A stretch of 64,000 nt of DNA, taken from positions 248,001 to 312,000 of the forward strand of contig NIVC01000868.1 of assembly GCA_002269645.1 (NCBI GenBank). Reading direction: 5' to 3'. The notes beneath the pieces were generated by a model, which saw only the letters and a program-made list of their open reading frames with translations, searched no databases and was not told where the DNA came from. The translations under genes were made by a program, and so were the position numbers. Every line of letters starts with the position of its first letter. The first letter of the stretch is position 1. The DNA is from Macrostomum lignano (Eukaryota). This document shows positions 275 through 47,829 of the stretch, in pieces.

Positions 275-3200
275 AGATTGAAGAGCCAATCAGAAGGCAG
301 CGAGAGGGAGGAAGATTGAAGAGCCAATCAGAAGGCAGCGAGAGGGAGGGAGATTGAAGAGCCAATCAGAAGGCAGCGACTACAAAGGAAAGACCTCGGC
401 GCCGTGGTGGAACCCGGAGCTGGGGAAACTCAGGCGGAAGGCCAAAAGCCTTCATCGCCGTGCCATGAAGACCGGAAACCCGGAGGACATGGAGCTTTTC
501 CGGCAAGCCTCCCGCAATTTCAAATCTGAAGTGCGCAAGGCCAAGGAATGTAAGTGGCGCTAATTCTGCAATGAATTGGATCAAGACAGACCTACTTCTA
601 GGCTTGTCAAGGCCCTTACAATGGACAAAATGTCCAAATTAGCCATGATCAAAAAAGATGATGGCTCTCTTACTAAAGACCCTGAAGAAGTGCTTCAGCA
701 TATGCTCAGCACATTCTTCCCGAGGGTACCTACTGCTAGACCGGAGCCCAACCATTCGATGGATGGAGCCACCCTAGCGGCGGGCATTGTCACTGAAGAC
801 CTAATCGCTCGTGCAGTCAGAACCTTCAAACCCTTCAAATCTCCTGGACCTGATGGTATCTACCCTGTTCTCCTTCGTGAAGCAGCCAAGATACCCTCGT
901 TCCTGAGACTCACCCGCAATCTTATGCGGGCCTCTATCCAGCTGGGATACGTTCCCAAATGCTGGACTGAAGCTCGGGTAGTCTTTATTCCCAAACCTGG
1001 GAAGGGTGACTACCAAAGCGTCAAGGCCTTTCGGCCTATTAGCTTAACGTCAGCAATGCTTAAGCTCACTGAGAGGCTTATTCTCTGGCGGCTGCTGTCC
1101 TGCGAGCTGACAGCGATGCCCCTCAGCAATAATCAGCACGCCTTCCGTACCGGGAGGTCGACTGACAGCGCCCTGCATGCGATTGTCGAGAAGATTGAAA
1201 GGGCGGTACTGGGTGACGGTTACGCTCTGGCTCTCTTTCTTGACATTGTTGGCGCCTTCGACAACGTTATCTTTGAAGCGTTTCAGAGGGCCCTTCAAAA
1301 TCGCAAAGCTCATGCTACCCTCATACGGTGGATCATGTACATGATCTCAAACCGTACGGTCACTGCCCAACTTCTTGGGCAAACTGCCTCCACCAGAGTC
1401 TGTAAGGGTGGACCCCAAGGCGGAGTCCTCACCCCGACGCTCTGGAACCTGGTCATGGACGCTCTTTTGAGTGACTCCCGACCCGACCCCGTCTTCAAAG
1501 TCGGGTATGCTGATGACGTCACGGCCATTGTGGCAGGACCGTCTCCCAGCACGCTCAGGGATCTGATGCAGAGCTTTATCCGCAAAGCAGAATCCTGGGC
1601 CAATGACAATGGTCTGGAACTCTCTGAGCCCAAAACCGTTGCCATTATGTTTACCAGCAGACTACGCTGGAACATACGTCCTCTGCAGCTCTACGGCAGA
1701 GATATTGCCTTCGCGCACCAGACCAGATGTCTCGGGGTCATACTTGACCACCGGCTCAACTGGTCCTCCCACGTGAAAGCAAAAGCCAAGCGTGCCTCAG
1801 CCATCCTGGCCCAGCTCCGACGAGCACTTGGCACTTCTTGGGGTCTATCCCCAAAGCGGCTTTGGTGGATCTATACTTCCGTAGTTAGACCTGCCATTAC
1901 GTACGCCTCTGTTGTCTGGGTTAGCGCTACCCAGGTCAAAAGCCATGCAGACCTGCTCAACACGATCCAAGGCAGAGCGTGTAGGCTCATCTGCAACGCC
2001 ACCAGGTCCACGCCCTTTGCTGGCATGGGGGCCTTCCTTAATCTTCCGCCTCTTGACCTCTTCATCAGGGGTGAGGCGGCTAGAACGACGCGGCGTCTAA
2101 TTGATGCCGGCGTCAAATTCATTTACATGAGAGCACCTGCTAAGCGGAACCTTGTCCCGCATAGCGATCTGTGCCTCAACTTTCTCAACGAGTGTCAGGC
2201 CAATCGCGTCTTCACCGATGGCATTGCCTCAACGCTCAACCTGAGACAGCGCTACTCCGTAGCTATCGACTCGCGCGATAACATCAATGACCAATGGAAC
2301 CCTGGTGAGCTTCATTGCTACACCGACGGTTCTAAGCAGTCAGCCAACACCGGCTTTGGTGTTGGAATCTTTCTGAACGGGAGGGTCATCGCTACCCACG
2401 CTCAATACACTGGGGTCAACTCCAGTGTTTTCCAAAATGAAGTTCTGGCCATCAGCTCCTGCACTGCAGAGCTTCTCGCCACTGGCGTTACGGTAAGAAC
2501 ATCATTTTCCATTCGGACAGCCAAGCTGCCTTGCACGCCATCAGTGGCTGCAGCACCAACTCTGCTACAGTCCTCGACTGTATCAAACTCCTCAACGTGT
2601 TGGGTTCCGCCAACAAAATTACCCTTAAGTGGGTTCCGGGGCATGTGGGGATCCGAGGAAATGAGTTGGCTGACACCCTTGCAAAAGTTGGTGCCTCCGG
2701 CTCCTCTCTCGGCCCCGAACCTCTTGTCCCGATTCCTGGCTGTGTCATCGACTCGCGCATCAAAGCGTGGATCAGGACTCAGCACCGCTCGACTTGGGCG
2801 AACCGCACGAACTGCAGGCAATCCAGAGGCGCTGTCCCTCAGCCCTCTCACCAGCTCCGGAAGCTTCTTGCGCCTCTCGCGCAGAGACATCCGGGCTGCC
2901 ACCATGACCCTCTCTGGTCACGGCTGCTTCTCCAGGCACCAGTACCTGCAGGGCAACGCCACCAACGCCACCTGTAGTTTCTGCAACTCAGGTGACGAAA
3001 CCGCTGAGCATTTCGTCAGCATCTGTCCCGCCTTCACGCGGGCCAGACTCACTTACCTCGGGCCACACACATCTATTACTGAAGCGCGCAAACCCGAAAA
3101 CTTTAATCAGCTCATGCGCTACCTTCGGGCCACCCGCGCGCAGGGCTGAAGGGCTCTCCTTTCCAGAGAGCACTATAGCTGCTGGCGACACTGGGGGACC

Positions 3201-3773: not shown

Positions 3774-6700
3774 CTGCTCCGCCCGCTCGTGCAGCTGCTG
3801 CTCCTGCAGCTTCGCCTCCGCCGCCCGCTCGGCCGCCGACTTCTCGGCCTCCACCGTGGAGCGCATCGACCGCAGTGCCTGCCGCAGCCTGGCGTTCTCC
3901 GCTGCAGCCGCCTCGGCTGCCGCCGCCGCCCGTGCCCGCTCGGCTCGCAGCTCCTGCAGCTGCCGCCGCAGCTCCGCGGCCTCCTCCGAGCGCCGCTCCT
4001 CCGTCGAGCCGCGCGCCGCCAGCCGCTCGAGGTCGGCCTGAAGTTCCGTGGTGCGAGCCCGCAGCCCGGCTTCTGAGCGCTGTAGGTCGGCAAGTTCCGT
4101 CTCCCGGCGCCCGAGGTCCGCCTGCACCGCCTCCAGCTGAGCCTCCAGGGCCGACACCTGCGATAGGGCACCGGCCGCCTGCGGCACCGCGGATTGAGTG
4201 GCTTAGGATTAAGGTAATATCTCTGTTACTCTTCCTCGTTCTCGTGTTTCAACATCTCAGCATCTTTCATCCTCACCTGCTCCTGCATCCCCAGCTTTCC
4301 TCAACCTCACCTGTTCCTGAGCCCGCCTAGCAGCTTCCCTCGCCTCAGCGACCAGCGTCTCAGCCGCCGTGACGCGGCGCCTTTCCCGCTCCTCCACGGC
4401 TGCGCAGTGCGCCAGCAGCCGCGCCGCTTCCGTGACGGCCTCCTCGCGCCCAGCGCCGGCGTCATCCAGCAGGTTGCGCTGACGACCCTCGGAGTCGCGC
4501 AGCTGCCGCACCTGAGATGGACCGATTGGCGGGCAAGTAGGCGTTAAACTTGAAGCAAAATTCTCTTCTGAGTCAACTGCAGACAGTTTCGTGTGACCTC
4601 ACCTGACCCCGTAGGTCGGCCACCTCCGCCCTCAGCCGGGCACCGGCCTCACCCGCCTCGCGCGCTTGCGCCTCCGCAGCCGCAAGCTGCACCCGCAGAG
4701 AGGCGGCCGCAGCCTCCGCGTTGCCGGCCCGGTCCAGCCGCTCCTGGAGCTGCTCCACCTGCGTCTGCAGGCGGCCCCGCTCGAAGGCCAGCCGCTGTCG
4801 GCCCTCCGTGAGCTCGCGCAGCCGGCCCTCGACGTCCGAGCCGCCGCCGCCTCCGCCAGCGTCGCCTCCGCAGGCCCGCAGGCGCTCGAGGAGGCCGGCG
4901 TTTTCCGCCTCCAGCTGGTCGCGGGCGGCCTCCGCCTCGGCCAGGCGGGTCTGCAGGCGGCCCACGGCCGAGTCCAGGCGGTCCCGTTCCGAGGTCATGT
5001 CGCCCAGGGCCGAGGACACCCGGTCCTGCGGATGCGAGTTTGCCGGTCAGTGCCGCGGTTGAAGCATTCGGGCATCACCAGCTTAGGCCTGCGTAACTGA
5101 CTGAACTAGCTGGAGCTCAAACGCAGAGTTTTTTCTAAAATCGAGCCCATAAATAGACGCGTTGAGCAACTCCGCTAACGCTAACCCGCAAAAATTGGAA
5201 CACCCTGAAGACTCAGCTCGGCAGTAGGGTTAGTATGGGTGCCCAGCTACCAGCTGCTCAGCAATGCTGCCCACCACCTTTCCCCAGTCGGCATTTCACC
5301 TGCTTTCCCGACTACCCGACCAGAAAGTGCTTCAAACCGGTTACCTGCAGCCCCCGCTTGTCCGCCTGCAGCTGCTGGGCGCTTCTCTCCAGGCCTCTCG
5401 CCCGCTCCCTCTCCGCCTCCAATTGTGCAGCCGTCTCCGCCAGGCGCCTCTCCGCCGCTCCAGCCTCTGACCTGGCTTCATCCAGCTGCGCCTCCAGCTG
5501 GTCGGCCAGCCGCTCCTGCCGCCTCAGCGCCTCGCGCAGCTCGATCAGCCGCCCGTCCCGCTCGTGGCCTTCGCGCAGAGCTCGAACCTCGGCCTGCAGG
5601 CCGGCCGCCTCCTCCGCCGCCTCCGCGACCGCCCGCTGCAGCCGCGCCTCCGTCGAGCGTCGCGTCGCTTCCGCCTCCGCAGCCGAGCGCTCCGCCGCCT
5701 CCTTGGCCTCGCGGGCCTGCGCCGCCTCCTCGGTCAGACGGCGCCGCTCCGCCTCCCAGTCGGCTGCTGAGGAGGCGGCCGCTGACTGCAGCCGCTGCCG
5801 CTCGGCCTCCAGCGCTGCCTGGCGGGTCTCCAGGCGGGACACCTCGGCGCGGCTCCGCTCCGCTTCTGCGCTGGCCTGCGCTCGCTGATGGATTTATTGA
5901 CGGCGGCAGTTGAGGATTCGAGTGGGAAGGTGCACCGGATTCCAGGTTGGAACTAATGTTTCAGGTTCCCAGGTTCCAGTTTCCAACCGGGTTCCAGGTT
6001 CCATCCAGGTCCCAGGTATCAATCAGGTTCCATTCAGGTCACAGGTATCAATCAGGTTCCATTCAGGTCACAGGTATCAATCAGGATCCATTCAGGTCAC
6101 AGGTATCAATCAGGATCCATTCAGGTCACAGGTATCAATCAGGTTTCATTCAGGTTCCAAGTATCAGTCAGGTCCTTGGTATCAATCAGGTCCCAGGTAT
6201 CAATCAGGTCCCAGGTATCAATCAGGTCCCAGGTATCAATCAGGTCCCAGGTATCAATCAGGTTCTAGGTATCAATCAGGTTCCAGGTATCAATCAGGTT
6301 CCAGGTATCAATCAGGTCCCAGGTATCAATCAGGTTCTAGGTATCAATCAGGTTCCAGGTATCAATCAGGTCCCAGGTATCAATCAGGTTCCAGGTATCA
6401 ATCAGGTTCCAGGTATCAATCAGGTCCCAGGTATCAATCAGGTTCTAGGTATCAATCAGGTTCCAGGTATCAATCAGGTCCCAGGTATCAATCAGGTTCC
6501 AGGTATCAATCAGGTTCCAGGTATCAATCAGGTCACAGGTCCCAAGGTATCAATCAATCAGGTTCCATCCCGATCAAAGTTATCGATCGGGTTCTATTCA
6601 AGTCACAGGTATCAATCAGGTCCCAGGTATCAATCAGGTCCCAGGTATCAATTAGGTCACAGGTATCAATCAGGTCACAGGTCCCAAGGTATTAATCAGG

Positions 6701-9700
6701 TTCCATCCAGGTCCCAAGGTATCAATCAGGTTCCATCCAGGTCCCAAGGTATCAATCAGGTTCCATCCAGGTCCCAAGGTATCAATCAGGTTCCATCCAG
6801 GTCCCAAGGTATCTGTGGCGGAAAGTGCAATTCATTATTTTCAATCAATTACTCCATCTCAATCTGCGCCGACTCTATTATGCCCGCACATTGATTTTCT
6901 CCAAATACGCCCGTATCGATTTAATGTACGCAAATGCGATGTACGCAAGCCAGGTGAACTTACTCTTTTTTACACGGCCTTCATTAACTATTTAATAAAT
7001 AAACTGTAGCCCAGTGAGGCTCGGATCGTGTTTTTTTGTGCATAGCGCAGCGTCGCTAAAAGTTCAATCCAAATTGACTACAATTCAACTACATGGCGCC
7101 CGAACAGTGAAATTCTACTAGCTATGATTCAGCAAACCGCGCTTTGAGGTTCAGGCTTGGGATCGGAGCTACAGGAATCGTCTGAATCTGCTCAACAGTT
7201 CCTACGTCTTCAAGGCTCCTGTCGGCATCCGTTTCTGGGTCCTGAGGTTCATCAACAAGAGCATCTTCGTGAAACTCCTTCGGCTGCGCGGACTTGTTGA
7301 GAAATTTTCTGTTTTTTGCTAATTCATTTGACTTATAATCAAATTTCCCGTTTGTGTTTTTAAGCGAAGATTAGTTTTTTGTTAGATTATACCCACTGTC
7401 TTTTTTGCTCTTCTCGTGCCTCATATCTGCTCGGCTTTTGCTTCCTTCTTTCTTTCATCTGTCCTCTCGCCTGTCTCTGCTCTGTTTTTCTCAGCCTTTG
7501 ATGGAGGAGTTCAAGAAAGACCGCGCTGTGCTGCGTCGTTCGGCTACGTTGCTGGTGGAAAAGATTCAGGCGGTTTTGGCTGGAGCAGAGAAATCAGAGG
7601 ATGAGGTAAATGGTTTGCTGCGCTTGGTGGTGACGAAGAAAACTGAGCTGGAAAAAGTCGACAAGCAGATTTTGCGCGAATTTGTTACAGACGATGGTGA
7701 GCCAACTGACAAGCTGCAGGAAGAGACGGAAAAATGTGACGAGTATATGCTCAAATTAGAAAGAGCGGCTGCAGGTCTAGAGCGGATTCAGGAGAAAAGA
7801 TTTAAACCGGTGGCTGCCCCATCTTCAATTGGTTCAGGAAGCCCAGCGTCAGCTGTCGGTTCCAAAGTAATACCAGAGACGGCTGATCGCAAGTGCAATG
7901 TGAAGCTGCCGAAGATGAGTCTGCCTATTTTTGACGGGAGCGATCCAACTCAGTGGCCCAACTTTAGTTCGCAGTTCAACTCATCAATCCACCAGAATTT
8001 GCATCTGTCAGATGTCGAAAAATTTTCATATCTTCAGAGCTGTCTAAAGGGTGAAGCACGACGATGCATCGAGAACTTTAAACTTACGACGGGTGACTAC
8101 CACAACGCCTGGGAGTTGCTGGAAGATAGGTATGGGTCTCCAGATAACCTCATTCAACACTTCATGAAGAGGCTCGAGACAGTCCGATGCGCGTGCGATT
8201 CCACTGTAGCTCTACGCTCATTCTTAGACGTCGTGAGATCCAGCGTCCGAGCCCTAGAAACTTTAGGAGTGGCTACAAACAACTACGAAGTGCTACTTCT
8301 GCCGAATCTGGAAGCTAAGCTGCCCGGATCAATTCGCGCTGACGTCATGCGCCCAATTCTGACTAGAACTTATAGAAAACCGTCAAATCTGGAAAACTTC
8401 TTAGATGCACTCGACGACGAAATTAAACTCCGTGATCGATGTGCCCTGGGCTCAGGCAGATCAGGCGACCAAAGCCGACACACGCCAGAGATACGTTGTT
8501 CTGTAGCAGGACCTACTCAGAAGTTTTCATGCGACCAAGATTCGCATCCCTCTTCGTTCGTCACGCATCATCCGGCGTCAAAGGAGCAGAACAAAGCAGC
8601 AGAGAGTCAGCAATCGGATTCAGCGCAAAATTCCGTTTCGTGCACTTACTGTCGTCAGGGTCACTATTCCGATTCTTGCACGGTTGTTCCCACAGCAAAG
8701 GAGAGGATAGAGATTCTGAAAAAGGAGAGACGCTGCTTTTGCTGCCTACGACCGAACCATCCTTCCAGTCAGTGTCGATCGAAGAGAGCTTGTCGCCATT
8801 GCGGTAAAATGCATCACCCGAGCGTCTGCCTGACTTCCCATCCTGGCGAAGCGCATCCTGCGATGACGAAAGTGGGAGCTGGGCACGTAGATCAGCAGAA
8901 AATAGTAACTCCACCGAACTGCAGTAGCACAACAGCCGTGACCATACCATGCGAGGACAAGACAATCTCTGAGAGTCAATCCCTTGTCGTGCACTCCAAT
9001 CCTGCAGTGATCATGCCGACTGCTAAGTGTCTCATCATCAGTTCGGATGGCAAAACCGAAGTTCTGGTCCGTGCGCTCTTTGACACCGCCAGCAATAAAA
9101 CTTATATCAGACAAGATTTAAGTCTGCAGCTGGACCTTGCAGTTGAGGCAACGGAAATTTTGCGGGTCAACACATTTGGATCCAGCAGCACTGAATTCAC
9201 ATCAAGCATCGTCAGATTTAGCATTCGCAAAGCCAACTCTCTGGACGAAGATTATGTGACTCTGAGAGGCTACACGACTCCTCGGATCTGCGAACCTCAG
9301 GCATCGGCGATGTGCGACGCTCATCCAGAACTCCAGCGTCTTGATCTGGCGGATCCATTTGACCCTCGCGATGCTAATGAGCCGATATCTATCTTGATTG
9401 GTGCCGATTGCTACTATGATTTGGTGGACGGCGACATCATTAGAACAGTGAGCGGCAATGGTCCAGTCGCCGTTAAGAGCAAACTTGGCTATCTGGTCAC
9501 CGGCAGATTGAGAATTGCTGACACGCTTTGTGCTTCCTCGTCCGCATGCGCGATGCACTGTTCCGGAGAATCCCTAATGGAGGGTATGCTGGCAGATTCC
9601 ACAAGCAGTGAACTAGATCCGGTGAGGGCGAAACGGCCATTCCCTCCAAGTCTGGAATTTGAGCAAGGTAGATACTCCATCGGTCTGCCATTCAGGGATG

Positions 9701-12700
9701 GATGTCGAAAACTTCTCAGTGACAATTTTGGTCTCGCCTACCGACGGCTAAGATCAACTGCGGAAAAGCTGCGTCAGACAGGAACAATCGACGAGTATGA
9801 CAGGATCCTGCAGGAACAGCTGAACAGTGGCGTCATAGAGCCTGTGCCATCTGACAGTGATCCCGAATCAATCCAGCACTATCTGCCGCATTTGCCGATT
9901 GTCAAAAAGGACAGTTCGACGACGCGACTTCGTATCGTCTTTGATGCGAGCGCCAAGTCTGCAGCCGGCTGTTCGTTGAACGACGTATTGGAACAGGGTC
10001 CTTGCCGCTTGCCGTCTGTGGCTTCTTTGCTGCTTCGGTTCAGGACTCATCCTGTCGCGATGATAAGCGATGTTGAGAAAGCATTCCTGCAAGTTGTCAT
10101 TCGGGAGAAGGACCGCGACGCGGTTCGGTTCCTGTGGCTTACACATCCTCATCAGAAAGAGTCCACGATTCGAGTACTTCGCTACGTACGTCTCGTGTTC
10201 GGCTTGGTGAGCAGTCCGGCCATTCTCCAAGAGGTGCTTCTCTATCACTTTCGAAACACGCAAAAGGCTTCGCCGGACACCATTAAACGGCTGGCGATGG
10301 ACACGTACGTGGACAATCTCGTGACTGGGTCTGATTCGGCCGGCTCAGCGATTTTGATCTACAAACAGACCAGAGAAGTATTCGAAGAAGCTTCAATGAA
10401 TATCCGAGGATGGATATCCAATTCAGCAGAGCTAAACAAAGTTTTCGATAAGGATGGCACTGGTGTTCAAAACTCTTCTACGGTCAAGGTTCTGGGCATG
10501 CTTTGGGATCCGAAAGAGGACAGTTTCGTGCTTTCAATCCACGATCATCCTACTCTAAACATTCGGAATGCAGAACTAACAAAGCGCTCGACGTTGTCGG
10601 CATTCTCAAAGACTTTCGACCCCTTGGGTCTACTCAGTCCTCTTCTGACACGTCCTCGATTGCTGTTTCAGCAGAGTTGTCGCTTGAACTTGGGCTGGGA
10701 CATGCCGCTTCCGGAACCGCTCAGGAGTCAATGGCACGAGTGTTTCAGCGAGTTGGAAGGCTGGAATTGTTGCATCGACAGGCCTCTTGCTACATCAACA
10801 CCAATCGCTTCCGAAATTCATGGTTTCTGCGACGCCTCCAAGGTGGCGCACGCAGCCTGCGTCTTCCTGAGGTCTACTTTCGAGTCTGGTGAGGTTAGGG
10901 TGTCGCTGCTCATGGCCAAGTCGCGTGTCGCTCCCATCGCTGAGACGACCATCCCTCGACTAGAACTGATGGCAGCCAGAGAACTGGCTCACATGATCAT
11001 TGAGGTTCGTAAAGAATTTCCTGATGCCGCCGTAATCTGCTGGAGTGACAGCATGGACGCGTTGTGGTGGATAAAGTCGGAACACAAAACTTGGAAGATG
11101 TTCATCCAGAACCGCGTTGTGTTCATTCGGTCAGTGGTTCCACCGGACAGTTGGAGACATTGCCCTGGGAAAGAAAATCCTGCTGACATTGCGACTCGTC
11201 CCATCACTACGGAATTGCTCGACAATCGCTCCTGCTGGTTTTGTGGACCTACTTGGCTGTGGTCCGACTCTTCAACATGGCCGGTTCAGCCAGATTTTTC
11301 TGACAAGTCTAGCCTGGATGACAGCTCCACTCATTGTGTGACTCTGGAAGTCGTCGACCCTCCGGAACCTCGTATTCGAATAGACGAAGTGATAGACTTG
11401 CCGAAGTTCAGCAGTTTAGAGAGACTTCTCCGAGTGACAGCGTGGGTCCTCCGCTTCGTCACATCGCTGAGGAATCGCACCCGTGCCTTGTCGGCTACCT
11501 TAACTGCTGCCGAATTGCATTCCGCTGAGAAGCTATGGATTCGTTCTCTTCAGGCAAAAGCCTTCAGTCCGGAGATACAGTGCATCACTAAAAACTCCGC
11601 GAAGACACCATTAATCCTGAATCTCCGCCTGTATCTGGACAGCGACGACGTCCTTCGCTGCTCAGGACGCCTGGGTGAATCGGATATAGCGCCGGATCAG
11701 AAGTCACCGATTTTATGTCCTACGGATGTAAACTTTCAGCAAATACTTACTGAGCATGCTCACGGGAAGGTGGCTCACGGGGGAGTTGCAGCTACGTTGG
11801 TGCAGATTCGCGAGAAGTATTGGATGCTGAAGGCTCGGCAGAAAGTTAAATCTACTCTACGGCGTTGCAACACCTGCATCCGGCTCCAGGGTTTGCCGTA
11901 CAAAGTTGGTCAGCAGTCGCAGTTACCCCTGTCAAGAATCGAATCGCTGAGAGCTTTCCAGCATGTTGGCCTGGACTACTGCGGTCCGCTTTTCTACCGC
12001 AGGGGGAGGGAGATGGCCAACAAAAAGCCTACATCCTGCTTTTTGCCTGCATGGGCACCCGAGCGGTCCATCTTGAAGTGACCACAGATTTGACTACTCA
12101 ATCTTTTCTGCAGAGTCTTCGTCGCTTCTGTGCTCGTCGCGGGATTCCGTCAATCATTTCGGACAACTTCAAGACTTTCCACGCAGCCGCGCGACTACTA
12201 GACGCCCACACGGCGCCCCTTCAAACCACAGGAGGTCAAGAGTTTTTAGCCGCCAAAAGAATCTGCTGGTCGTTTATCCCAGAAAAAGCACCATGGATGG
12301 GCGGATTCTACGAGCGATTGGTTGGTGTCGTGAAGTCGGCTTTGAAAAAGACCGTCTGCAAAGCCTTTCTCACTCTGGACGAGTTAACAACAGTTGTGTG
12401 CGAAGTGGAGGCAGTTGTGAATTCAAGACCACTCGGGTTCGTCTCGTCCGAAGCGCACGCGGAAGTGATCACGCCGAGTCATTTTCTTGTGCTGCATCGC
12501 CTGACAAAAGAACCAGAAGCGAATCCGAAAGGCCAAACAGTCCTGCCTCTTCCAGAGCGTCTGAGCAAAGTGCGGCGGATGCTGACCAAATTCTGGCGAG
12601 AATGGTTGAATGAGTACATCGTGGCTCTGCGCGAGCGTTCAGCAAGGAAGGAAGGACGAACTTCTGATCGCATAATCAAGGTCGGAGATGTCGTTTTGGT

Positions 12701-14836
12701 GATGGACGCCGGCGTGCCGAGGCTGCAATGGAAGCTGGCGGTTGTGGAAGCGGTACATCATGGCCGTGATGGCGTTGCTAGGTCGTGCCTCCTGAGGTTA
12801 GCTAGTCCGCATCGTAGTCGCGCTGCTGTGCATTTTCGGCGGCCGGTGGCGTCGCTGGTTCCTCTGGAGGTCTAAGCCTGTCTCTTTCTTTCTTTGATCT
12901 TGTCTCGTGCTGTCTCGCCGTCGATCTCTCAGTCTATCTTTGTCTGCGTTTGCGTCGTCTAAATTCTGCGAGCTATCTGTAGCCACTGCGTGATTAGTTA
13001 CTGATTCTGTTTCACTTGCATGATTTTTGCTGGCAATCAAATAATGCCTCTTGGTGTCGTAAGTACCTACGCAAATTCGACGCACTATTTTTAATCCGCA
13101 ATTAATCATAGTTTTGTTTGATTTTAATGTTCCAATTTTTGATTGTCTTTGTGTCAAGGCACTTATTTCCAATATCAAATATTTTCTCGAAGTGCATTCG
13201 CTTGTTTAGCTCGAAAATTTGTATTCGATAAAAGAACTCGCATTCGATGTCTCGTCTTTATTTTCAGTGAAAGTTAGACTTTGCAGCCCTTTCCTTTTTA
13301 GCCAGAGGTCTTGAGTTCGAACCTCTGGCGGGGGAGTGTGGCGGAAAGTGCAATTCATTATTTTCAATCAATTACTCCATCTCAATCTGCGCCGACTCTA
13401 TTATGCCCGCACATTGATTTTCTCCAAATACGCCCGTATCGATTTAATGTACGCAAATGCGATGTACGCAAGCCAGGTGAACTTACTCTTTTTTACACGG
13501 CCTTCATTAACTATTTAATAAATAAACTGTAGCCCAGTGAGGCTCGGATCGTGTTTTTTCGTGCATAGCGCAGCGTCGCTAAAAGTTCAATCCAAATTGA
13601 CTACAATTCAACTACAGTATCAATCAGGTTCCATCCAGGTCCCAAGGTATCAATCACGTTCCATCCGAACACAGTTATCAATCAGGTTCCATCTAGGCCA
13701 CAGTTATCAATCAGGTTCCATCTAGGCCACGGGTATCAATCAGGCCTCGCTCACCTGCTCCGCCTCCTGATTGGCTGCAGCCTCGGCGGCCTCGACCCGC
13801 TCCCTGACGGCCTTGGCGGATTCCTCCAGGGCGCGGCGCAGCTCCACCTCCCGCTTGGCTGCCGCGCGAAGCTCCTCGCAACTGCGCCGGAATCGCTCCA
13901 GCGAGGCCTCCTGCGAGTCCGTACGGATTGCCAGCTCGGACTGAAGTTCGGGGGGGGGAGAATCGTCAATTTCTGGTGCTGGACTCCGCCACCAACCCAC
14001 CAACTGAATCCGCGCTCACCTCGCGCTGCTTGAGCGCCTCCTCGCTGGCCAGCAGCTCCTCGACTTTCAAGCGGAGCTGCTCGGCCTCCGACTTGGCCGC
14101 GTCCCGCTCTTGAGCAGCGGCCTGAAGCTGCTTCTCCCAGGTGGCGTACTCGGCCTGGGGGTGGGCAAGCGAGCGGTTGTGAAATTTGCAAACTCTGAAC
14201 AGCCAGCAAGCGAAGGCAAAAAGTTTCTGTGCGTCAAAATGTTGGTAAAGTTTGAAGAAAAATTCTCCATTTTTCATGTGATATCGCAACTTCATCAACT
14301 GCACAGCCTCGAGCAAAACATTTGCAGGCCTAATTTGGCGATTCAGTCAGTCTGAAAGAGAACGAACTGCACTTGCTGACCTAATTTGGCGATTCAGTCA
14401 GTCTGGAAGAGAGCGAACTGCACTTGCTGACCTAATTTGGCGATTCAGCCAGTCTGAAAGAGAACGAACTGCACTTGCTGACCTGGAACAGCCGCTTGGC
14501 CTGGCCCAGCTTGCCGGTGATTTCGCTCTGCGCTCGCAGCGTCCGCTCCCGCTCCGCCTGCACGGCCAGCAGCTGCTCCCGCACGCTGCGCACGCTGCCC
14601 TCCAGCTCGCGGATTCGAGCCACGAGCACCTCCCGGGGAGTTCGCTGGCAGCGACTGCTGCTTGTCAGGCTGCTCACTGAGCCGCGCGGTGACTGGAGGC
14701 CGCTGTTGCTGCCATTGTCATGGCAACCGCTGACGCTGCCGATATCGCTAAGTTCGCCGAGAATCTTTTTGCTCTCGGCTGCAGTCATCTGCAGCTTTTT
14801 CAGCAGGTTGTCAATTGTGTGCTCGTCAACTTCCAT
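3774..14836 (-). CDS. Long coiled-coil protein, 3' end outside the window (at least 741 aa)
   Basis: Exons 14483-14836, 14020-14154, 13755-13940, 5345-5884, 4603-5025, 4311-4511 and 3774-4157. All introns are GT-AG and phase 0, giving a continuous E/A/R/L-rich heptad frame. The last exon ends at a donor (CAG|GTGTGT), so the gene continues leftward. Confidence 0.85.
5945..6813 (+). repeat. 18-bp minisatellite (CAGGTATCAATCAGGT[T/C]C), intronic; continues at 13617-13741
   Basis: Dozens of tandem copies, interrupted by the LTR element. Confidence 0.95.
6814..13616 (+). mobile_element. Full-length BEL/Pao LTR retrotransposon
   Basis: 280-bp LTRs at 6814-7093 and 13337-13616 (TG...CA), one mismatch seen. 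5-bp TSD GTATC. PBS TGGCGCCCGAACAG at 7094-7107. PPT at about 13327-13336. Confidence 0.97.
7501..12875 (+). CDS. BEL/Pao gag-pol polyprotein with one frameshift near 12001-12006
   Basis: DUF1759-like gag, three Cys/His knuckles, protease LFDTAS, RT YVDN, RNase H FCDAS, integrase HHCC, then integrase core (ISDN) and DUF5641-like tail in the -1 frame after a G5 run. Confidence 0.92.
14330..14482 (-). repeat. 3 x 51-bp tandem repeat at the start of intron 1; each unit reads GT...AG
   Basis: Units 14432-14482, 14381-14431 and 14330-14380 read GTCAGCAAG...TTCTCTTTCAG...CCAAATTAG. Confidence 0.92.
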
Positions 14837-42415: not shown

Positions 42416-43141
42416 GACGCGCTGATTACCTCCATAATGTCATTGTGCACGATGCGCATGTACGACTTCGTTATACTCGCATGTAAATTTACACCATATC
42501 TTCAGAATGCCGGTGCCGGGTTATTATATGTGCTGTAGATTGCTATAATTCTACTATTAAGTATGTTCAATCATTGCTGAGATATCTAGACTTGCGGGAT
42601 TGGGAAGGCTGAGATGCCAACAAGTCTGAGGTCAGAAACTTCATGTAGTTCATGAAAAAAATTATTCCATTGTTCGTTGGCTCCCCAACTGGGGGCGCTG
42701 ATTGCTACGAGTAGTACCTCGTACTATAGATTTACCTGACCTGGAGAATGTGAATTTTTGCGAACGTACAAGCGTATAAGCCTTCGAATAACACTTCCCC
42801 AGTAGTACTCGTCACACAGCAGCCAAAAATGAAGGATCACTTGTTGCTCTTTTTTTAGAAAACCGATTGTCCGCTAAATCTCTAGCGTAAGCTCTTTAGC
42901 GTAGCGAAGTAAGGTGTAATTAATTCTTCAGCCGAGAAAAACAGAAGAAAAACAAAAACAGCTGAAAGCAAACCGAACGGCATCAAGCAATTTTAGTTCC
43001 AGTGGTTAATTATTTATTTTTCTCACAATCTCCTCATATTACCAGATCACATTAGGAAAAAGCAACGCGTCAACAATGGCTACTGGAGTGGCGGGGAAAC
43101 AAATGGCGAAGGGGAACTCCGACTGGATAACTGAGTCTCAA

Positions 43142-43618
43142 TTAGCGCTTGCCGCCAACCCGTGGCGCGGTGGGCTTCATGACCTTGGCCGCCTTCTGCT
43201 TCTGGCCGGCGGGGCGGGACTGCTTGGCCTCTGCTTGCTTCTGCGCCTTCTTCTCGGCCTCCTTGGCCTTGGCCTTCTCCTTGGCGTTGCGGACCGCCTG
43301 CTCTCGCTGGGCCTTGCGGAACTCCGGCTTCTGGTTGCGCTTGGCCATGAGGTCGGCCATGGACAGGCCGGCCACCGCCCGGATGGCCTTGTGCGACTTG
43401 CGCGACTTCTTCTTCGCGGCCTCCTCCACCTGGCCCTTCTTGTGCTTGCGCCGGTACAGCACAGTCCAGCTGACCTCGCGCGGATTTTTCTTCTGAAAGT
43501 GGGAGCGCTCGCACTTCGAGTTTAGGAAGTGGAAGGTCTTGCCATCGGTGCGGATCAGCCAGCGGCCGCGGCCGGGGTACACCTTGAAGCCGGAGAAGCT
43601 GCACAGCTCAAGCTTCAT
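43142..43618 (-). CDS. RPL24: 60S ribosomal protein L24 (eL24), intronless CDS, 158 aa
   Basis: [48 protein letters not shown]. Acceptor CTGTTGCAG 11 nt upstream of the ATG; AATAAA at 43013-43018 (minus). Confidence 0.98.
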
Positions 43619-43723
43619 CGAGCGGCTGGCTGCAACAGAATTTGGGGGAGGCGAGACTTACTGAGATTGAACAAGTGAACATGAATAATCAATCAGGAAT
43701 TGATCCCTATCAACAAAAGCGCA

Positions 43724-43799
43724 TCAGAATCGACTGGCAATATCAGGCCAGCATTGAAGCTGGATTCATTCCGCCCGACGCCGATATTTGCCTCATCAT
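43724..43799 (-). ncRNA. Box C/D snoRNA, copy 1
   Basis: AUGAUGA (C), AUCGGCGUCGGGCGGA, AUGA (D'), CCAGC/GCUGG hairpin, UGAUAU (C'-like), UGCCAGUCGAUU, CUGA (D). Confidence 0.75.
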
Positions 43800-43872
43800 T
43801 TGAGCTTGTGAGTAACTTTGCATACATTTACAGAAAAGCAGCTTATACTTGTAGTGAATAATTCGCACAGGC

Positions 43873-43953
43873 TCAGAATCGACTGGCAATATCAGAGCAA
43901 CTTTTGAAGCTGCTGGCTTCATTCCGCCCGACGCCGATATGGGAGCTCATCAC
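43873..43953 (-). ncRNA. Box C/D snoRNA, copy 2
   Basis: GUGAUGA...CUGA with the same two guides; the internal linker differs. Confidence 0.75.
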
Positions 43954-44095
43954 GGCTGGTGCGATGCAGGAATTCAAACATTAACTCGCAGACCTACGCA
44001 GTAGAGGAAACACAAGAGTCTGAACTTAGAGAACCTGTTTGACCTGACTACTAAGTACTAACGCCAGGTTTAATCGTCTTAAAAATCACACCCGC

Positions 44096-44182
44096 TCAGA
44101 ATCGACTGGCAATATCAGGACCCGGCTGTTTTACAAGCCAGATTGAGTCATTCCGCCCGACGCCGATATGGGAGCTCATCAC
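44096..44182 (-). ncRNA. Box C/D snoRNA, copy 3
   Basis: GUGAUGA...CUGA with the same two guides. Confidence 0.75.
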
Positions 44183-44315
44183 GGCTGGTGCGATGCAGGA
44201 ATTCAAACATTAATTCGCAGACCTAAGCAGTAGAGCAAACACAAGAATCTGAACTTAGAACCTGTCTAACCTTCCCATTACCGTCAGGTTTAATCATCTA
44301 AAAAATCACACCCGC

Positions 44316-44402
44316 TCAGAATCGACTGGCAATATCAGGACCCGGCTGTTTTACAAGCCAGATTGAGTCATTCCGCCCGACGCCGATGTATGAGCTCATC
44401 AT
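44316..44402 (-). ncRNA. Box C/D snoRNA, copy 4
   Basis: AUGAUGA...CUGA with the same two guides. Confidence 0.75.
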
Positions 44403-44832
44403 AGCTGGTGTGAGTTGATGTTTTAAGGTATAAAGCCTAGGCTATCAGTAAACTCGATATCAAATAAAAAGCAAGTCGAAAAAGGACATATTAAGAGTTG
44501 AAGGCAAAGCAAGGCATGTGAATAATAGCAATGCAAACATGCTTGGCAATGAATTCTCTGTGCGAGCAGCTCAGCCCTCAATGGGCAGTGAGAACTGCTG
44601 CGGCAGTCACTGAATAGAATCTGATAGAAGCGTCACTGAACCGAAATAAAATGATTAAAAAACGCAGAACCAGTGCAATGAAATCCTGGAGACATAAAAA
44701 ATCAAAGACTAAAAAATGGCTCAAACACCTGTCCAATTACAGCCGCACATCAGGCAGAGAAAGCATCACAGAACAAAAAGGATTTGGAACAGAGAAAGCG
44801 CAGACCCTGGCCCGATGGCCGTCAGCTCACTG

Positions 44833-44905
44833 GGCGAGCATCGATCAGCGAGGCCTGGGCTTCCGACTGGGCGGCTTTGCGCCGGGCCGCTTCATTCTGG
44901 CCACC
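44833..44905 (-). promoter_or_regulatory. SECIS element candidate (form 2)
   Basis: AUGAA (44891-95), 12-nt GC-rich helix, AAA (44876-78), mini-stem CCG/CGG, UGAU (44844-47); about 520 nt downstream of the in-frame UGA. Confidence 0.6.
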
Positions 44906-44983
44906 GGCCCGGGTCCGCGATGGGGGAGACAACGGTATCATAGGGGCTGTACTTTAGATTGCCCTAGCAGTAGTATATGCCAA

Positions 44984-45055
44984 GGGGGCAAATCAACTCA
45001 GTGGATGACGCGTCTGACTTAAGCGACACAGCGCCCGAGTTCGATTCTGCGCTCG
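44984..45055 (+). other. tRNA-like Pol III A/B-box segment (possible SINE head)
   Basis: AACTCAGTGG (44995-45004) and GAGTTCGATTC (45037-47) at tRNA-like spacing; no complete cloverleaf. Confidence 0.3.
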
Positions 45056-45418
45056 CATGTGGCTCCGGTCAGCAAAATGGGCATAAGTGCTGAGGTAGTG
45101 TCAAAGCTCCCCCAAAACTTTCCAACTCAACCAACCGCTTGTCTGCCACTCGAGTCTGAATCGAATTCTTTGAAATACTTCGCGTTCAACGCTAGCATTG
45201 ACCCCCACTCGACAGTACTCACTGCTAAGGCTGTATTGTACAAGAGTTCAGTTACGCACTAATTGGGACATACAAGTTCAAAAACTCCATTTAACCGCGC
45301 CAGCCAACTGTCGAGGCCGCAACCCGGCATTCGGTCCGGGCCCGGCCTGCAGCGGAATGCCGCCCCTTTCAAAGCCTCTGGAGGGGAAGGGGCGGCCATT
45401 CCCAGCTGGGAGGCGCAG

Positions 45419-45952
45419 TTAGCTTCATCCACCACCCGCGCTGGTGCAGGGCGGCGGGCGGTAGCGGGCCGCCGCTCCCGAGTCGCCGACCAGCGGGTTG
45501 TACTCATTGCGAAGGCGTCGCTTGCCGCCGCCGCTGCCGCCTCCAGAGGCATTGCGCCGCTGCTAAGCGGCGGAGACGGCGTCGGCCTCGTCGCCAGTGT
45601 ACTTCAGCAGCGAGCGGCGATTGCGGCCAGGTTGGCCAGGCACGTAGCCGGCAGAGGCTGAGGCGCTGTTGGCAGCGGTGGCCTCCACCTGCTTGGCCTC
45701 CCGCTGCTCTGCATCCAGCTGCAGCTGGCGGAGCTGTCTCTCGCGGGCCTCGGCAACGCGGGCCTGTCTGACTGCGAACTCCTCGCTGTCAGCCGCCGAG
45801 TCCGACCGCTTGGCGGCAGCGGCGCGGGCGCGCTGGGCGGCAGCGGCTGCCGCGGGCCGAACGTAGCGCGAGTAGATGAAAGCGGCAGCGCAGACTCCGA
45901 TGAGGAGAGGCCAGCCGTAGGTGGCCAGGAAATCTGCGGCCGCGTTTAGCAT
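45419..45952 (-). CDS. SELENOS: Selenoprotein S (VIMP)-like protein with C-terminal GGG-U-S
   Basis: N-terminal TM (TYGWPLLIGVCAAAFIY), coiled coil RQARVAEARERQ, and in the same frame RLRNEYNPLVGDSG..RYRPPPCTSAGGG-TGA(45425-27)-AGC-TAA. An in-frame TAG at 45563-65 is probably the acceptor of a 126-nt intron (45563-45688). Confidence 0.8.
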
Positions 45953-46149
45953 GGCTGGATTGGACTGGGGCTGCTTCAGTAGGGAGTCGAGAGCTGCGGG
46001 TGGGTGCGCAAGTTAATATGCGCTGCGGGATCAATTGCTCTAATGACACTTGGGACAAAGTGTGCCGTTGCTAAGGCACTGGAAAGCGGATGTGTGGCTG
46101 CTAGGAATACTGGAAACAGTCTAATAGGGGTGCGGTTGCTAAGTTCATT

Positions 46150-47035
46150 AGGAGTTGCTAAGTTCAACAGGATGTGAGGTTGCTAAGGACACAAGGAACA
46201 TGATGTGGGGTTGCTAACGACACAGGGAACATGATGTGGGGTTGCTAAGGATACAGGGAACAGGATGTGGAGTTGCTAAGGATACAGGGAACAGGATGCG
46301 AGGTTGCTAAGGACACAGGGAACAGGATGTGGGGTTGCTAAGAGCACAGGGAACATGTGGTTGCTAACGACACAGGGAACATGATGTGGGGTTGCTAAGG
46401 ATACAGGGAACAGGATGCGAGGTTGCTAAGGACACAGGGAACAGGATGTGGGGTTGCTAAGAGCACAGGGAACATGTGGTTGCTAACGACACAGGGAACA
46501 TGATGTGGGGTTGCTAAGGATACAGGGAACAGGATGTGGGGTTGCTAACGGCACAGGGAACATGATGTGGGGTTGCTAACGGCACAGGGAACATGATGTG
46601 GGGTTGCTAACGGCACAGGGAACATGATGTGGGGTTGCTAAGGTCACAGGGAACATGATGTGGGGTTGCTAACGGCACAGGGAACATGATGTGGGGTTGC
46701 TAACGGCACAGGGAACATGATGTGGGGTTGCTAAGGATACAGGGAACAGGATGCGAGGTTGCTAAGGACACAGGGAACATTATGTGGGGTTGCTAACGGC
46801 ACAGGGAACATGATGTGGGGTTGCTAACGGCACAGGGAACATGATGTGGGGTTGCTAAGGATACAGGGAACAGGATGCGAGGTTGCTAAGGATACAGGGA
46901 ACAGGATGCGAGGTTGCTAAGGACACAGGGAACATTATGTGGGGTTGCTAACGGCACAGGGAACATGATGTGGGGTTGCTAACGGCACAGGGAACATGAT
47001 GTGGGGTTGCTAAGGATACAGGGAACAGGATGTGG
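46150..47035 (+). repeat. 31-bp minisatellite (GTTGCTAA[G/C]G.CACAGGGAACA.GATGTGGG)
   Basis: About 28 copies upstream of the selenoprotein gene. Confidence 0.95.
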
Positions 47036-47829
47036 GTATACAATATAGTCTGAGCAACTGAACATCTCGTGAAACAGCGGCAAGGACGACCAATTTCGGC
47101 AGCAGATTTAATAGAAGCAGTAGCAGTCAATTCCGTACATACATAATAGATTAATTTGAAAAGCTAATGTATTTATAAACACTATTACATAGGCATTTAT
47201 GTCTACAAAATGAAACAGTATATAGGGATAAAACCAACAGAAACGTACTTGCAGGTCTTGCATTAGTTTACTTATGCATTCGAATATATCATAGAACAGG
47301 GCACGCATACAATATGAGTTTCGCTAGGGATTACAGAAATTGGTAACATTATTATACAGTAGCATTGCATATGCATGTAAGTACATGGTGTCCTACTTAG
47401 CAGCGACAGGCCGGGATGGAGACTAAAAACCGGTGCCGTTAATGACAAAGAGCAGAAATATTTAGCCAGACAGGTGCGCACAAACGCTCCGGCCTCTAGC
47501 AAGAGTAAGCAGGAAATGGAGAAAAAGATGACGCAATAAATAACCGCTCTTTAATTAAAGTTCGCACTCGCGCACATGTACAAATCAACTTACACGAACC
47601 AATCGAATACCTGATAAATTTCCAACTGGTTGTAGAAGCCGCGAGTACGGGGAGACCCTAGAAACAGAGCGCACAGGTTCGCTGAATGAGCAAAATGCCA
47701 AGTGAATTACACAGACAAATGGAGTGCCAGTTGGAACTGCGAACGCATCCGGGATGCGAAGTTCAGCGCACACGAGATAATCAAGCAACAGTTGCAGGCG
47801 ATTTGACTGCGTCAAGGACAGGGGAGAAC

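Follow-up and report, generated by a model that had tools for sequence, protein, structure and literature searches.

In this work, we analyse a compact group of genes in the flatworm Macrostomum lignano, where a gene for selenoprotein S (SelS), a hairpin resembling a selenocysteine insertion sequence (SECIS), four predicted small nucleolar RNAs (snoRNAs) of the box C/D class and an intronless gene for the ribosomal protein RPL24 (eL24) follow one another, in that order, on the minus strand. The group lies in a stretch of 64,000 nucleotides (nt; the window) of contig NIVC01000868.1 in Mlig_3_7, the NIVC01 assembly of this species (GCA_002269645.1). A first-pass annotation had placed SelS, the snoRNA cluster and RPL24 on this strand within 3 kb, an arrangement that the sequence bears out, and had proposed that one primary transcript gives rise to all of their products. 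We consider it likely that RPL24 is trans-spliced to the spliced leader (SL) and that the four snoRNA units, which appear to be isoforms of one RNA, lie within its outron, the discarded upstream RNA, which would be intercistronic RNA as well if transcription continues from SelS.

Organization of the locus

The features of the locus are collected in Table 1. We compared them with two near-identical copies of the locus, L002 (on NIVC01004618.1) and L004 (on NIVC01001360.1), and with a diverged paralogue, RPL24-B (L005 and L006); the gene in the window is RPL24-A. At the RPL24-B locus only the coding sequence (CDS) aligns, with 92% identity, no snoRNA guide motifs are found and a different gene, here called gene X, lies upstream. 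The CDS features at the compared loci are those of GenBank, and the calls at L005 equal PAA46385.1 and PAA46386.1.

Table 1 Features of the SelS, snoRNA and RPL24 locus in minus-strand order
Feature	Position	Strand	Remarks
CCCCAG acceptor	45965-45970	-	Annotated SelS mRNA/CDS begins at 45964; the ATG lies 12 nt further on
Selenoprotein S open reading frame (ORF)	45419-45952	-	ATG 45952; TAG 45565-45563; selenocysteine UGA 45427-45425; Ser; TAA 45421-45419
SECIS-like stem-loop	44799-44919	-	ATGA 44895-44892, AAA 44878-44876, GA 44846-44845; from folding
Spacer	44798-44414	-	385 nt, 41% T, no poly(A) signal; two CTTTCTCTG motifs
sno1, predicted box C/D	44306-44413	-	C 44402-44396, D 44319-44316; long external stem
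sno2, predicted box C/D	44085-44194	-	C 44182-44176, D 44099-44096; long external stem
sno3, predicted box C/D	43863-43964	-	C 43953-43947, D 43876-43873; external stem changed on both strands relative to sno1 and sno2
sno4, predicted box C/D	43717-43807	-	C 43799-43793, D 43727-43724; weak terminal stem
Candidate branch region CAGTAAGT	43656-43663	-	Overlaps the GTAAGT hexamer; 32 nt before the acceptor
TTGCAG, putative SL trans-splice acceptor of RPL24	43630-43635	-	Exon from 43629; 11 nt before the ATG
RPL24 (eL24) CDS	43142-43618	-	158 amino acids, no intron; matches PF01246; 62-64% identical to eL24 of flatworms and molluscs
AATAAA poly(A) signal of RPL24	43013-43018	-	124 nt past the stop

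Probable trans-splicing of RPL24

The first-pass annotation had noted a splice acceptor shortly before the RPL24 ATG and no obvious upstream exon, and both observations hold, the acceptor being TTGCAG and the ORF intronless. It had also relied on the use of SL trans-splicing by flatworms, which is documented for M. lignano itself, with a published SL and predicted operons. About 30% of the genes of this species have been reported as trans-spliced to the SL CGGTCTCTTACTGCGAAGACTCAATTTATTGCATG, at acceptors of the form [T/C]TNCAG, with GT[G/A]AG as the motif of cis donors, and the RPL24 junction TTGCAG|CC matches the published acceptor motif.

Further evidence comes from the assembly itself, as Mlig_3_7 was polished by Pilon with RNA-seq plus DNA reads. 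The eight bases before the RPL24 exon read TGTGCATG|CCAGCC in L002 and TGTTGCAG|CCAGCC in both the window and L004, so that L002 differs by four consecutive substitutions at -5 to -2 (window 43634-43631), each of which is the SL base; L002 carries a single further private substitution in the roughly 6 kb that were compared beyond the minisatellite. The junction of RPL24-B varies similarly, and independently, with TTGCAG|CTCAAAGC in L006 and TTGATG|CTCAAAGC in L005, where SL bases occupy -3 and -2 (L005 5996-5997). Because the assembly was polished with RNA-seq reads, these bases would be explained as SL sequence introduced by Pilon; in those contigs the acceptor AG is destroyed in the assembly. 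Moreover, the partial GenBank CDS of RPL24-B ('QSISSM...') begins at its TTGCAG junction, and the 2016 transcriptome of M. lignano contains an RPL24 transcript, from either the A or the B paralogue, that is flagged as trans-spliced (RNA1509_1862, {TRANSSPLICED}). The acceptor motif, the SL bases in L002 and L005, the GenBank 5' end of RPL24-B and the transcript flag thus all support the SL-capped RPL24 mRNA of the original proposal, and trans-splicing at 43630|43629 appears well supported, though indirectly.

Neither the full SL nor a longer fragment of it occurs in the window, which contains just five chance TTGCATG 7-mers, none at a gene start. Exact look-up in the protein collection found neither the 158-residue RPL24 protein nor any of 18 forms extended N-terminally by SL-derived, genomic or cis-spliced sequence. 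We also observe that the terminal AUG of the SL would open a short upstream ORF of 5 codons in RPL24-A (43629-43613) and 7 codons in RPL24-B (L006 5999-6021), the UGA of which overlaps the RPL24 AUG as AUGA; the overlap occurs in both paralogues despite the unrelated sequences of their 5' untranslated regions (UTRs), which are 11 and 17 nt long.

Four putative isoforms of a box C/D snoRNA

The four units upstream of the RPL24 acceptor each contain a C box (ATGATGA or GTGATGA) and a D box (CUGA), and they share the core TGATATTGCCAGTCGATTCTGA. Two guide-like stretches, GGCGUCGGGCGGA and UGCCAGUCGAUU, are 100% conserved in the four copies of the window, the remainder having diverged, and the stretches AUAUCGGCGUCGGGCGGAAUGA and CUGAUAUUGCCAGUCGAUUCUGA are invariant in all of them; chance would predict 0.01 occurrences of the 22-nt 3' core in the window, which has four. 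D' and C' boxes are represented by degenerate candidates only, AUGA after the first guide and UGAUAU before the second, which are likewise invariant. Pairing is retained where sequence is not: sno1 to sno3 fold with external stems of 6-10 base pairs built from different sequences (CACACC/GGTGTG vs CGCAC(C)AG/CTGTGCG), and the internal hairpins vary in sequence in the same manner. The four snoRNAs of the first-pass annotation are therefore retained as four box C/D units but not as four different RNAs; they are better described as predicted isoforms of a single box C/D snoRNA, the expression of which we infer from these features. Compared with ribosomal RNA, the guides gave partial matches only, and we claim no target.

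The sequence around the units is informative about how they might be hosted. There is no GTRAG donor between the SECIS-like element and sno4, and the snoRNAs therefore do not lie within a cis intron. A cis-spliced 5' exon of RPL24, which the first-pass annotation had named, along with a separate promoter and a lack of SL reads, as speaking against its proposal, was looked for, and none that encloses the snoRNAs was found; the sole GTRAG between the SECIS-like element and the acceptor lies downstream of sno4, as a donor-like GTAAGT at 43661-43656 that the earlier description had missed. The TAA inside the overlapping CAGTAAGT doubles as an in-frame stop upstream of the RPL24 ATG. Since no poly(A) signal intervenes between sno4 and the RPL24 acceptor, an RNA that includes sno4 would run into RPL24.

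Several smaller observations concern the units and their copies. ATTAAA hexamers occur on the minus strand at 44294-44289 and 44074-44069, about 15-20 nt past the 3' stems of sno1 and sno2, within a duplicated 220-nt unit. In sno3, L002 and L004 have TGCCAGACGATT in the second guide (43882) and T at 43895, and the window keeps the consensus of sno1, sno2 and sno4. In addition, a 28-nt stretch of L005 (around 5062-5089) resembles the 5' flank and stem of sno2 and sno3 (window 44210-44183 and 43980-43953, minus strand), with a score of 27-28 compared to a maximum of 23-27 for shuffled sequences; it may be the relic of a lost snoRNA, or a chance match.

A possible route of snoRNA production

Human box C/D snoRNAs are preferentially located some 50 nt upstream of the branch point, and their assembly becomes independent of splicing when the external stems are long (PMC5519232). 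At the M. lignano locus, sno4 has its 3' end 87 nt before the RPL24 AG, with about 55 nt separating it from the candidate branch A (CUCAG, 43662), and sno4 is the only unit placed at such a distance; sno1 to sno3 lie 233-676 nt from the acceptor. The outron of RPL24 would thus play the role that a 5' UTR intron has in the ribosomal-protein host genes of other animals. By its distance from the branch site, sno4 would be suited to splicing-dependent assembly of a box C/D small nucleolar ribonucleoprotein (snoRNP), whereas sno1 to sno3 would be too far upstream for assembly coupled to splicing, and their long external stems would allow splicing-independent assembly. In the order of events that we envisage, the SL is added to RPL24, the Y-branched outron is released and then debranched, cuts are made between the snoRNA units, and exonucleases trim up to the snoRNPs. 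This processing route, like snoRNA expression and the start of the primary transcript, is inferred from the arrangement of sequence features.

Four considerations count against an outron that hosts snoRNAs. First, the evidence for SL use comes from polishing artefacts, annotation and one transcript of either paralogue. Second, the GenBank CDS of RPL24 in the window is 5'-partial and starts not after an AG but at 43603, 15 nt inside the ORF ('CSFSGF...'); this position is near the point where the RPL24-A and RPL24-B sequences become identical, and the start may be an artefact of read assignment. Third, Rfam recognized no snoRNA family at the gathering threshold or at E <= 10, whether given the whole window, 4 kb or each feature, and the 731-nt cluster searched by itself at E <= 10 likewise gave none. 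Fourth, four snoRNAs in one excised segment are unusual for animals and require cuts between the units. On balance, we still regard an SL-trans-spliced RPL24 with four snoRNA isoforms in its outron as the probable arrangement.

One transcript with SelS or a separate promoter

Two accounts of where the primary transcript starts are compatible with that arrangement. In the first, which is the one originally proposed, RNA polymerase II transcribes the locus from SelS or from further upstream, and the single transcript yields SelS mRNA, four intercistronic snoRNAs and SL-capped RPL24; in the second, a promoter in the U-rich spacer just after the SECIS-like element makes RPL24 and the snoRNAs a unit of their own, with a monocistronic outron of about 1.1 kb and with SelS ending independently. 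The spacer must in either case contain the 3' end of SelS and any internal promoter. We give the single transcript close to an even chance.

What favours a single transcript is, first, the structure of the neighbouring genes. The gene upstream of SelS, a DUF4764 gene (50942-47830, minus strand), has its annotated start one base after TTACAG, and the first base of the SelS CDS directly follows CCCCAG; since these annotated 5' ends come after acceptor AGs, DUF4764, SelS and RPL24 form a same-strand run with 5' ends of the trans-splice type. The annotated start of gene X likewise follows CTACAG. Second, operons have been called in M. lignano from a spacing below 1 kb after subtraction of repeats, with a mode of about 100 nt. 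The distance from the end of the SECIS-like element to the RPL24 acceptor is at most 1,169 nt, and the 677 nt that remain without the Tandem Repeats Finder (TRF) array at 43919-44410 fall under this threshold, so that the SelS-RPL24 pair qualifies formally as an operon but sits in an ambiguous zone.

Third, poly(A) signals are distributed unevenly. The first-pass annotation had described the minus strand from the SECIS (44833) to the first snoRNA (44402) as U-rich and without AATAAA or ATTAAA, which a hexamer scan confirmed, and the same scan detected none of 15 variant hexamers there. Past the SelS stop, no AATAAA or ATTAAA occurs for 1,125 nt, and the next AATAAA is that of RPL24; similarly, gene X (L005 4572-6580) has neither hexamer for more than 2 kb, the next AATAAA being that of RPL24-B. 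In contrast, a canonical poly(A) hexamer follows the stop at 80-275 nt in each of RPL24-A, RPL24-B, the MFS gene and the DUF4764 gene. The lack of such a signal in the genes upstream of both RPL24 paralogues is suggestive only, as the comparison is of two genes against four. Finally, gene X and RPL24-B are joined across the spacer in one database protein (P0126), although this could be either a transcript or a prediction.

Against co-transcription, the spacer of roughly 1.2 kb exceeds the mode for operons about tenfold, and SelS mRNA would still need to be cleaved within it without a known signal. One would expect a ribosomal-protein gene to depend on its own strong promoter, and a highly expressed gene of this kind sits awkwardly downstream of a modest one. 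Right after the SECIS-like element, moreover, are two CTTTCTCTG motifs (44798-44790 and 44763-44755), which we take to resemble the TCT or terminal oligopyrimidine (TOP) initiator of ribosomal-protein genes. GenBank locus-tag numbers, when read as transcriptional units, also differ between RPL24-B and gene X.

The two motifs and the locus-tag numbers also speak for an internal promoter, together with the role of ribosomal-protein genes as classical snoRNA hosts and the published finding that about 60% of trans-spliced M. lignano genes lie outside operons. On the other side, the promoter itself is a motif match, there is no poly(A) signal ahead of it to end SelS, and transcriptional units as published are known to be broken up where spacers are rich in repeats. 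We hold this account to be tenable but short of an even chance; all tests made are equally compatible with an internal promoter in 44798-44414 and with a single transcript from SelS. A scan for promoters and terminators of bacterial type is not applicable to M. lignano.

It is unlikely, by comparison, that the snoRNAs are independent of RPL24, being made singly or as a cluster transcript of their own, with RPL24 either driven by a promoter within the 87 nt that separate sno4 from the acceptor or spliced from a short first exon through a 32-nt intron beginning with GTAAGT at 43661. The hexamer is a perfect match 32 nt before the acceptor, ATTAAA hexamers follow sno1 and sno2, and independent or clustered snoRNA genes have been described in yeast, plants and trypanosomatids. 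Yet the SL evidence argues against cis-splicing at this acceptor, 32 nt would be very short for an intron in a species with a published average of 1.1-1.4 kb, and the intron from GTAAGT 43661 to AG 43630 is rejected as the main route on both grounds. Nor is a motif common to the upstream flanks of the four units visible by eye, sno4 and RPL24 are not separated by a terminator or a poly(A) signal, and the spacing of sno4 fits a position coupled to splicing.

Equally improbable, in our estimation, is a more elaborate form of the single transcript in which the array is a working part of the operon spacer: snoRNPs on the nascent RNA would block a 5'-3' exonuclease and protect the RPL24 pre-mRNA until SL addition, SelS would be cleaved without a canonical signal, and trans-splicing of RPL24 would drive assembly of the sno4 snoRNP. 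If this were true, upstream 3'-end formation and the output of both the snoRNAs and RPL24 would be mechanically coupled, as an animal counterpart of the coupled processing of trypanosomatids.

SelS and its SECIS-like element

The selenoprotein gene of the first-pass annotation is confirmed in part. The ORF matches Pfam Selenoprotein_S (PF06936) with E=5.5e-11 over residues 5-175, and its end, AGGG-UGA-Ser-TAA, is the SelS hallmark; an in-frame TAG at codon 130, across which the Pfam match continues, interrupts it, so that the copy in the window is not an intact selenoprotein S gene. Codon 130 is TAG in the window and in L002 and CAG in L004 (around L004 position 1038), and therefore an intact SelS exists; the residue after selenocysteine is Gly in L004 vs Ser in the window. 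Two of the three assembled copies would accordingly be nonsense alleles, the one in the window being either such an allele or a paralogue. A small intron that removes the TAG and preserves the frame was rejected, as the sole in-frame GT..AG option is a G+C-rich segment of 69 nt without a pyrimidine tract (judged by eye) and L004 has CAG. The GenBank CDS (P0121, 'SNPAM...') is 5'-partial, and the terminal AUG of the SL would be in frame with SelS (MSNPA + M...).

The SECIS-like element lies about 525 nt past the end of SelS and is the single ATGA..AA..GA candidate with a paired helix II on the minus strand from 45425 to 43000. The Rfam SECIS models assign it no score, whether applied to the whole window, to 4 kb or to the element by itself, at both the gathering threshold and E <= 10, and we consider a SECIS supported at the pattern level only. 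A further hairpin, G+C-rich and near-perfect, begins about 15 nt after the SelS stop (45406-45349, minus strand) and has weak microRNA-like Rfam matches on both strands; as a structured element just 3' of the SelS UGA it was rejected, because its stability is no greater than that of shuffled sequences (z = -0.29).

Comparison with known systems

The hosting of snoRNAs by animal genes is understood through cis-spliced introns. Like the intron-encoded box C/D snoRNAs of vertebrate ribosomal-protein and TOP hosts, those of M. lignano lie on the same strand in non-coding RNA that would be spliced from the pre-mRNA of a ribosomal protein, the last of them placed some 50 nt before the candidate branch site and the units off this position equipped with external stems. 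Unlike the vertebrate segments, theirs is bounded by an SL acceptor without an upstream cis donor, which makes it an outron, and contains four tandem copies rather than one snoRNA per intron.

The locus likewise shares with the SL-resolved operons of M. lignano, Caenorhabditis elegans and Ciona the same-strand neighbours, a downstream gene that is probably trans-spliced near its ATG and, for M. lignano, a spacing that counts formally, though ambiguously, as within the distance used to call operons. It differs from them in that the spacer is much longer and contains functional-looking RNA genes, no canonical poly(A) signal follows the upstream gene and co-transcription is only putative. The arrangement also resembles the snoRNA clusters of trypanosomatids, which are processed from trans-spliced, polyadenylated precursors; M. 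lignano, however, is a metazoan with a minority of its genes trans-spliced, and here repeats of one snoRNA are directly upstream of a ribosomal-protein gene. As for selenoprotein S (SELENOS/VIMP), the predicted protein has the Pfam match, the Gly-rich C terminus, the penultimate selenocysteine and a SECIS-like element in the 3' UTR, but the copy in the window has a premature TAG (the sister copy being intact) and Rfam does not recognize its SECIS. Full-text literature searches returned no account of snoRNAs in outrons or operon spacers of metazoans, nor of snoRNA genes in M. lignano.

If snoRNAs are indeed hosted by an outron or operon spacer, SL trans-splicing would be seen to fulfil the purpose of cis introns. 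The locus would then be a tractable case, in an animal with transgenesis, in which to ask whether recruitment of the box C/D assembly machinery by the cis-spliceosome has a parallel in the trans-spliceosome, and it bears on the 3'-end formation of upstream mRNAs in flatworm operons that lack a canonical signal. For users of Mlig_3_7, our analysis further suggests that, at trans-splice sites with high expression, RNA-seq polishing replaced genomic bases of the assembly by those of the SL.

Neighbouring sequences

An exon search for the downstream MFS gene gave no match, and the SelS sequence of L004 is not on record for a check of shared transcriptional units via locus tags. The window is rich in minisatellites (57 TRF rows), including an array of 28 copies of a 31-bp unit between the DUF4764 gene and SelS (46166-47036); the equivalent spacer of the RPL24-B locus contains two different arrays. 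Retrotransposon ORFs are found on the plus strand, one of them a reverse-transcriptase ORF of 857 amino acids at 576-3149, and 7405-12875 of the same strand encodes a polyprotein of the BEL/Pao type with DUF1759, RVT_1, Peptidase_A17, integrase zinc-binding and DUF5641 domains.

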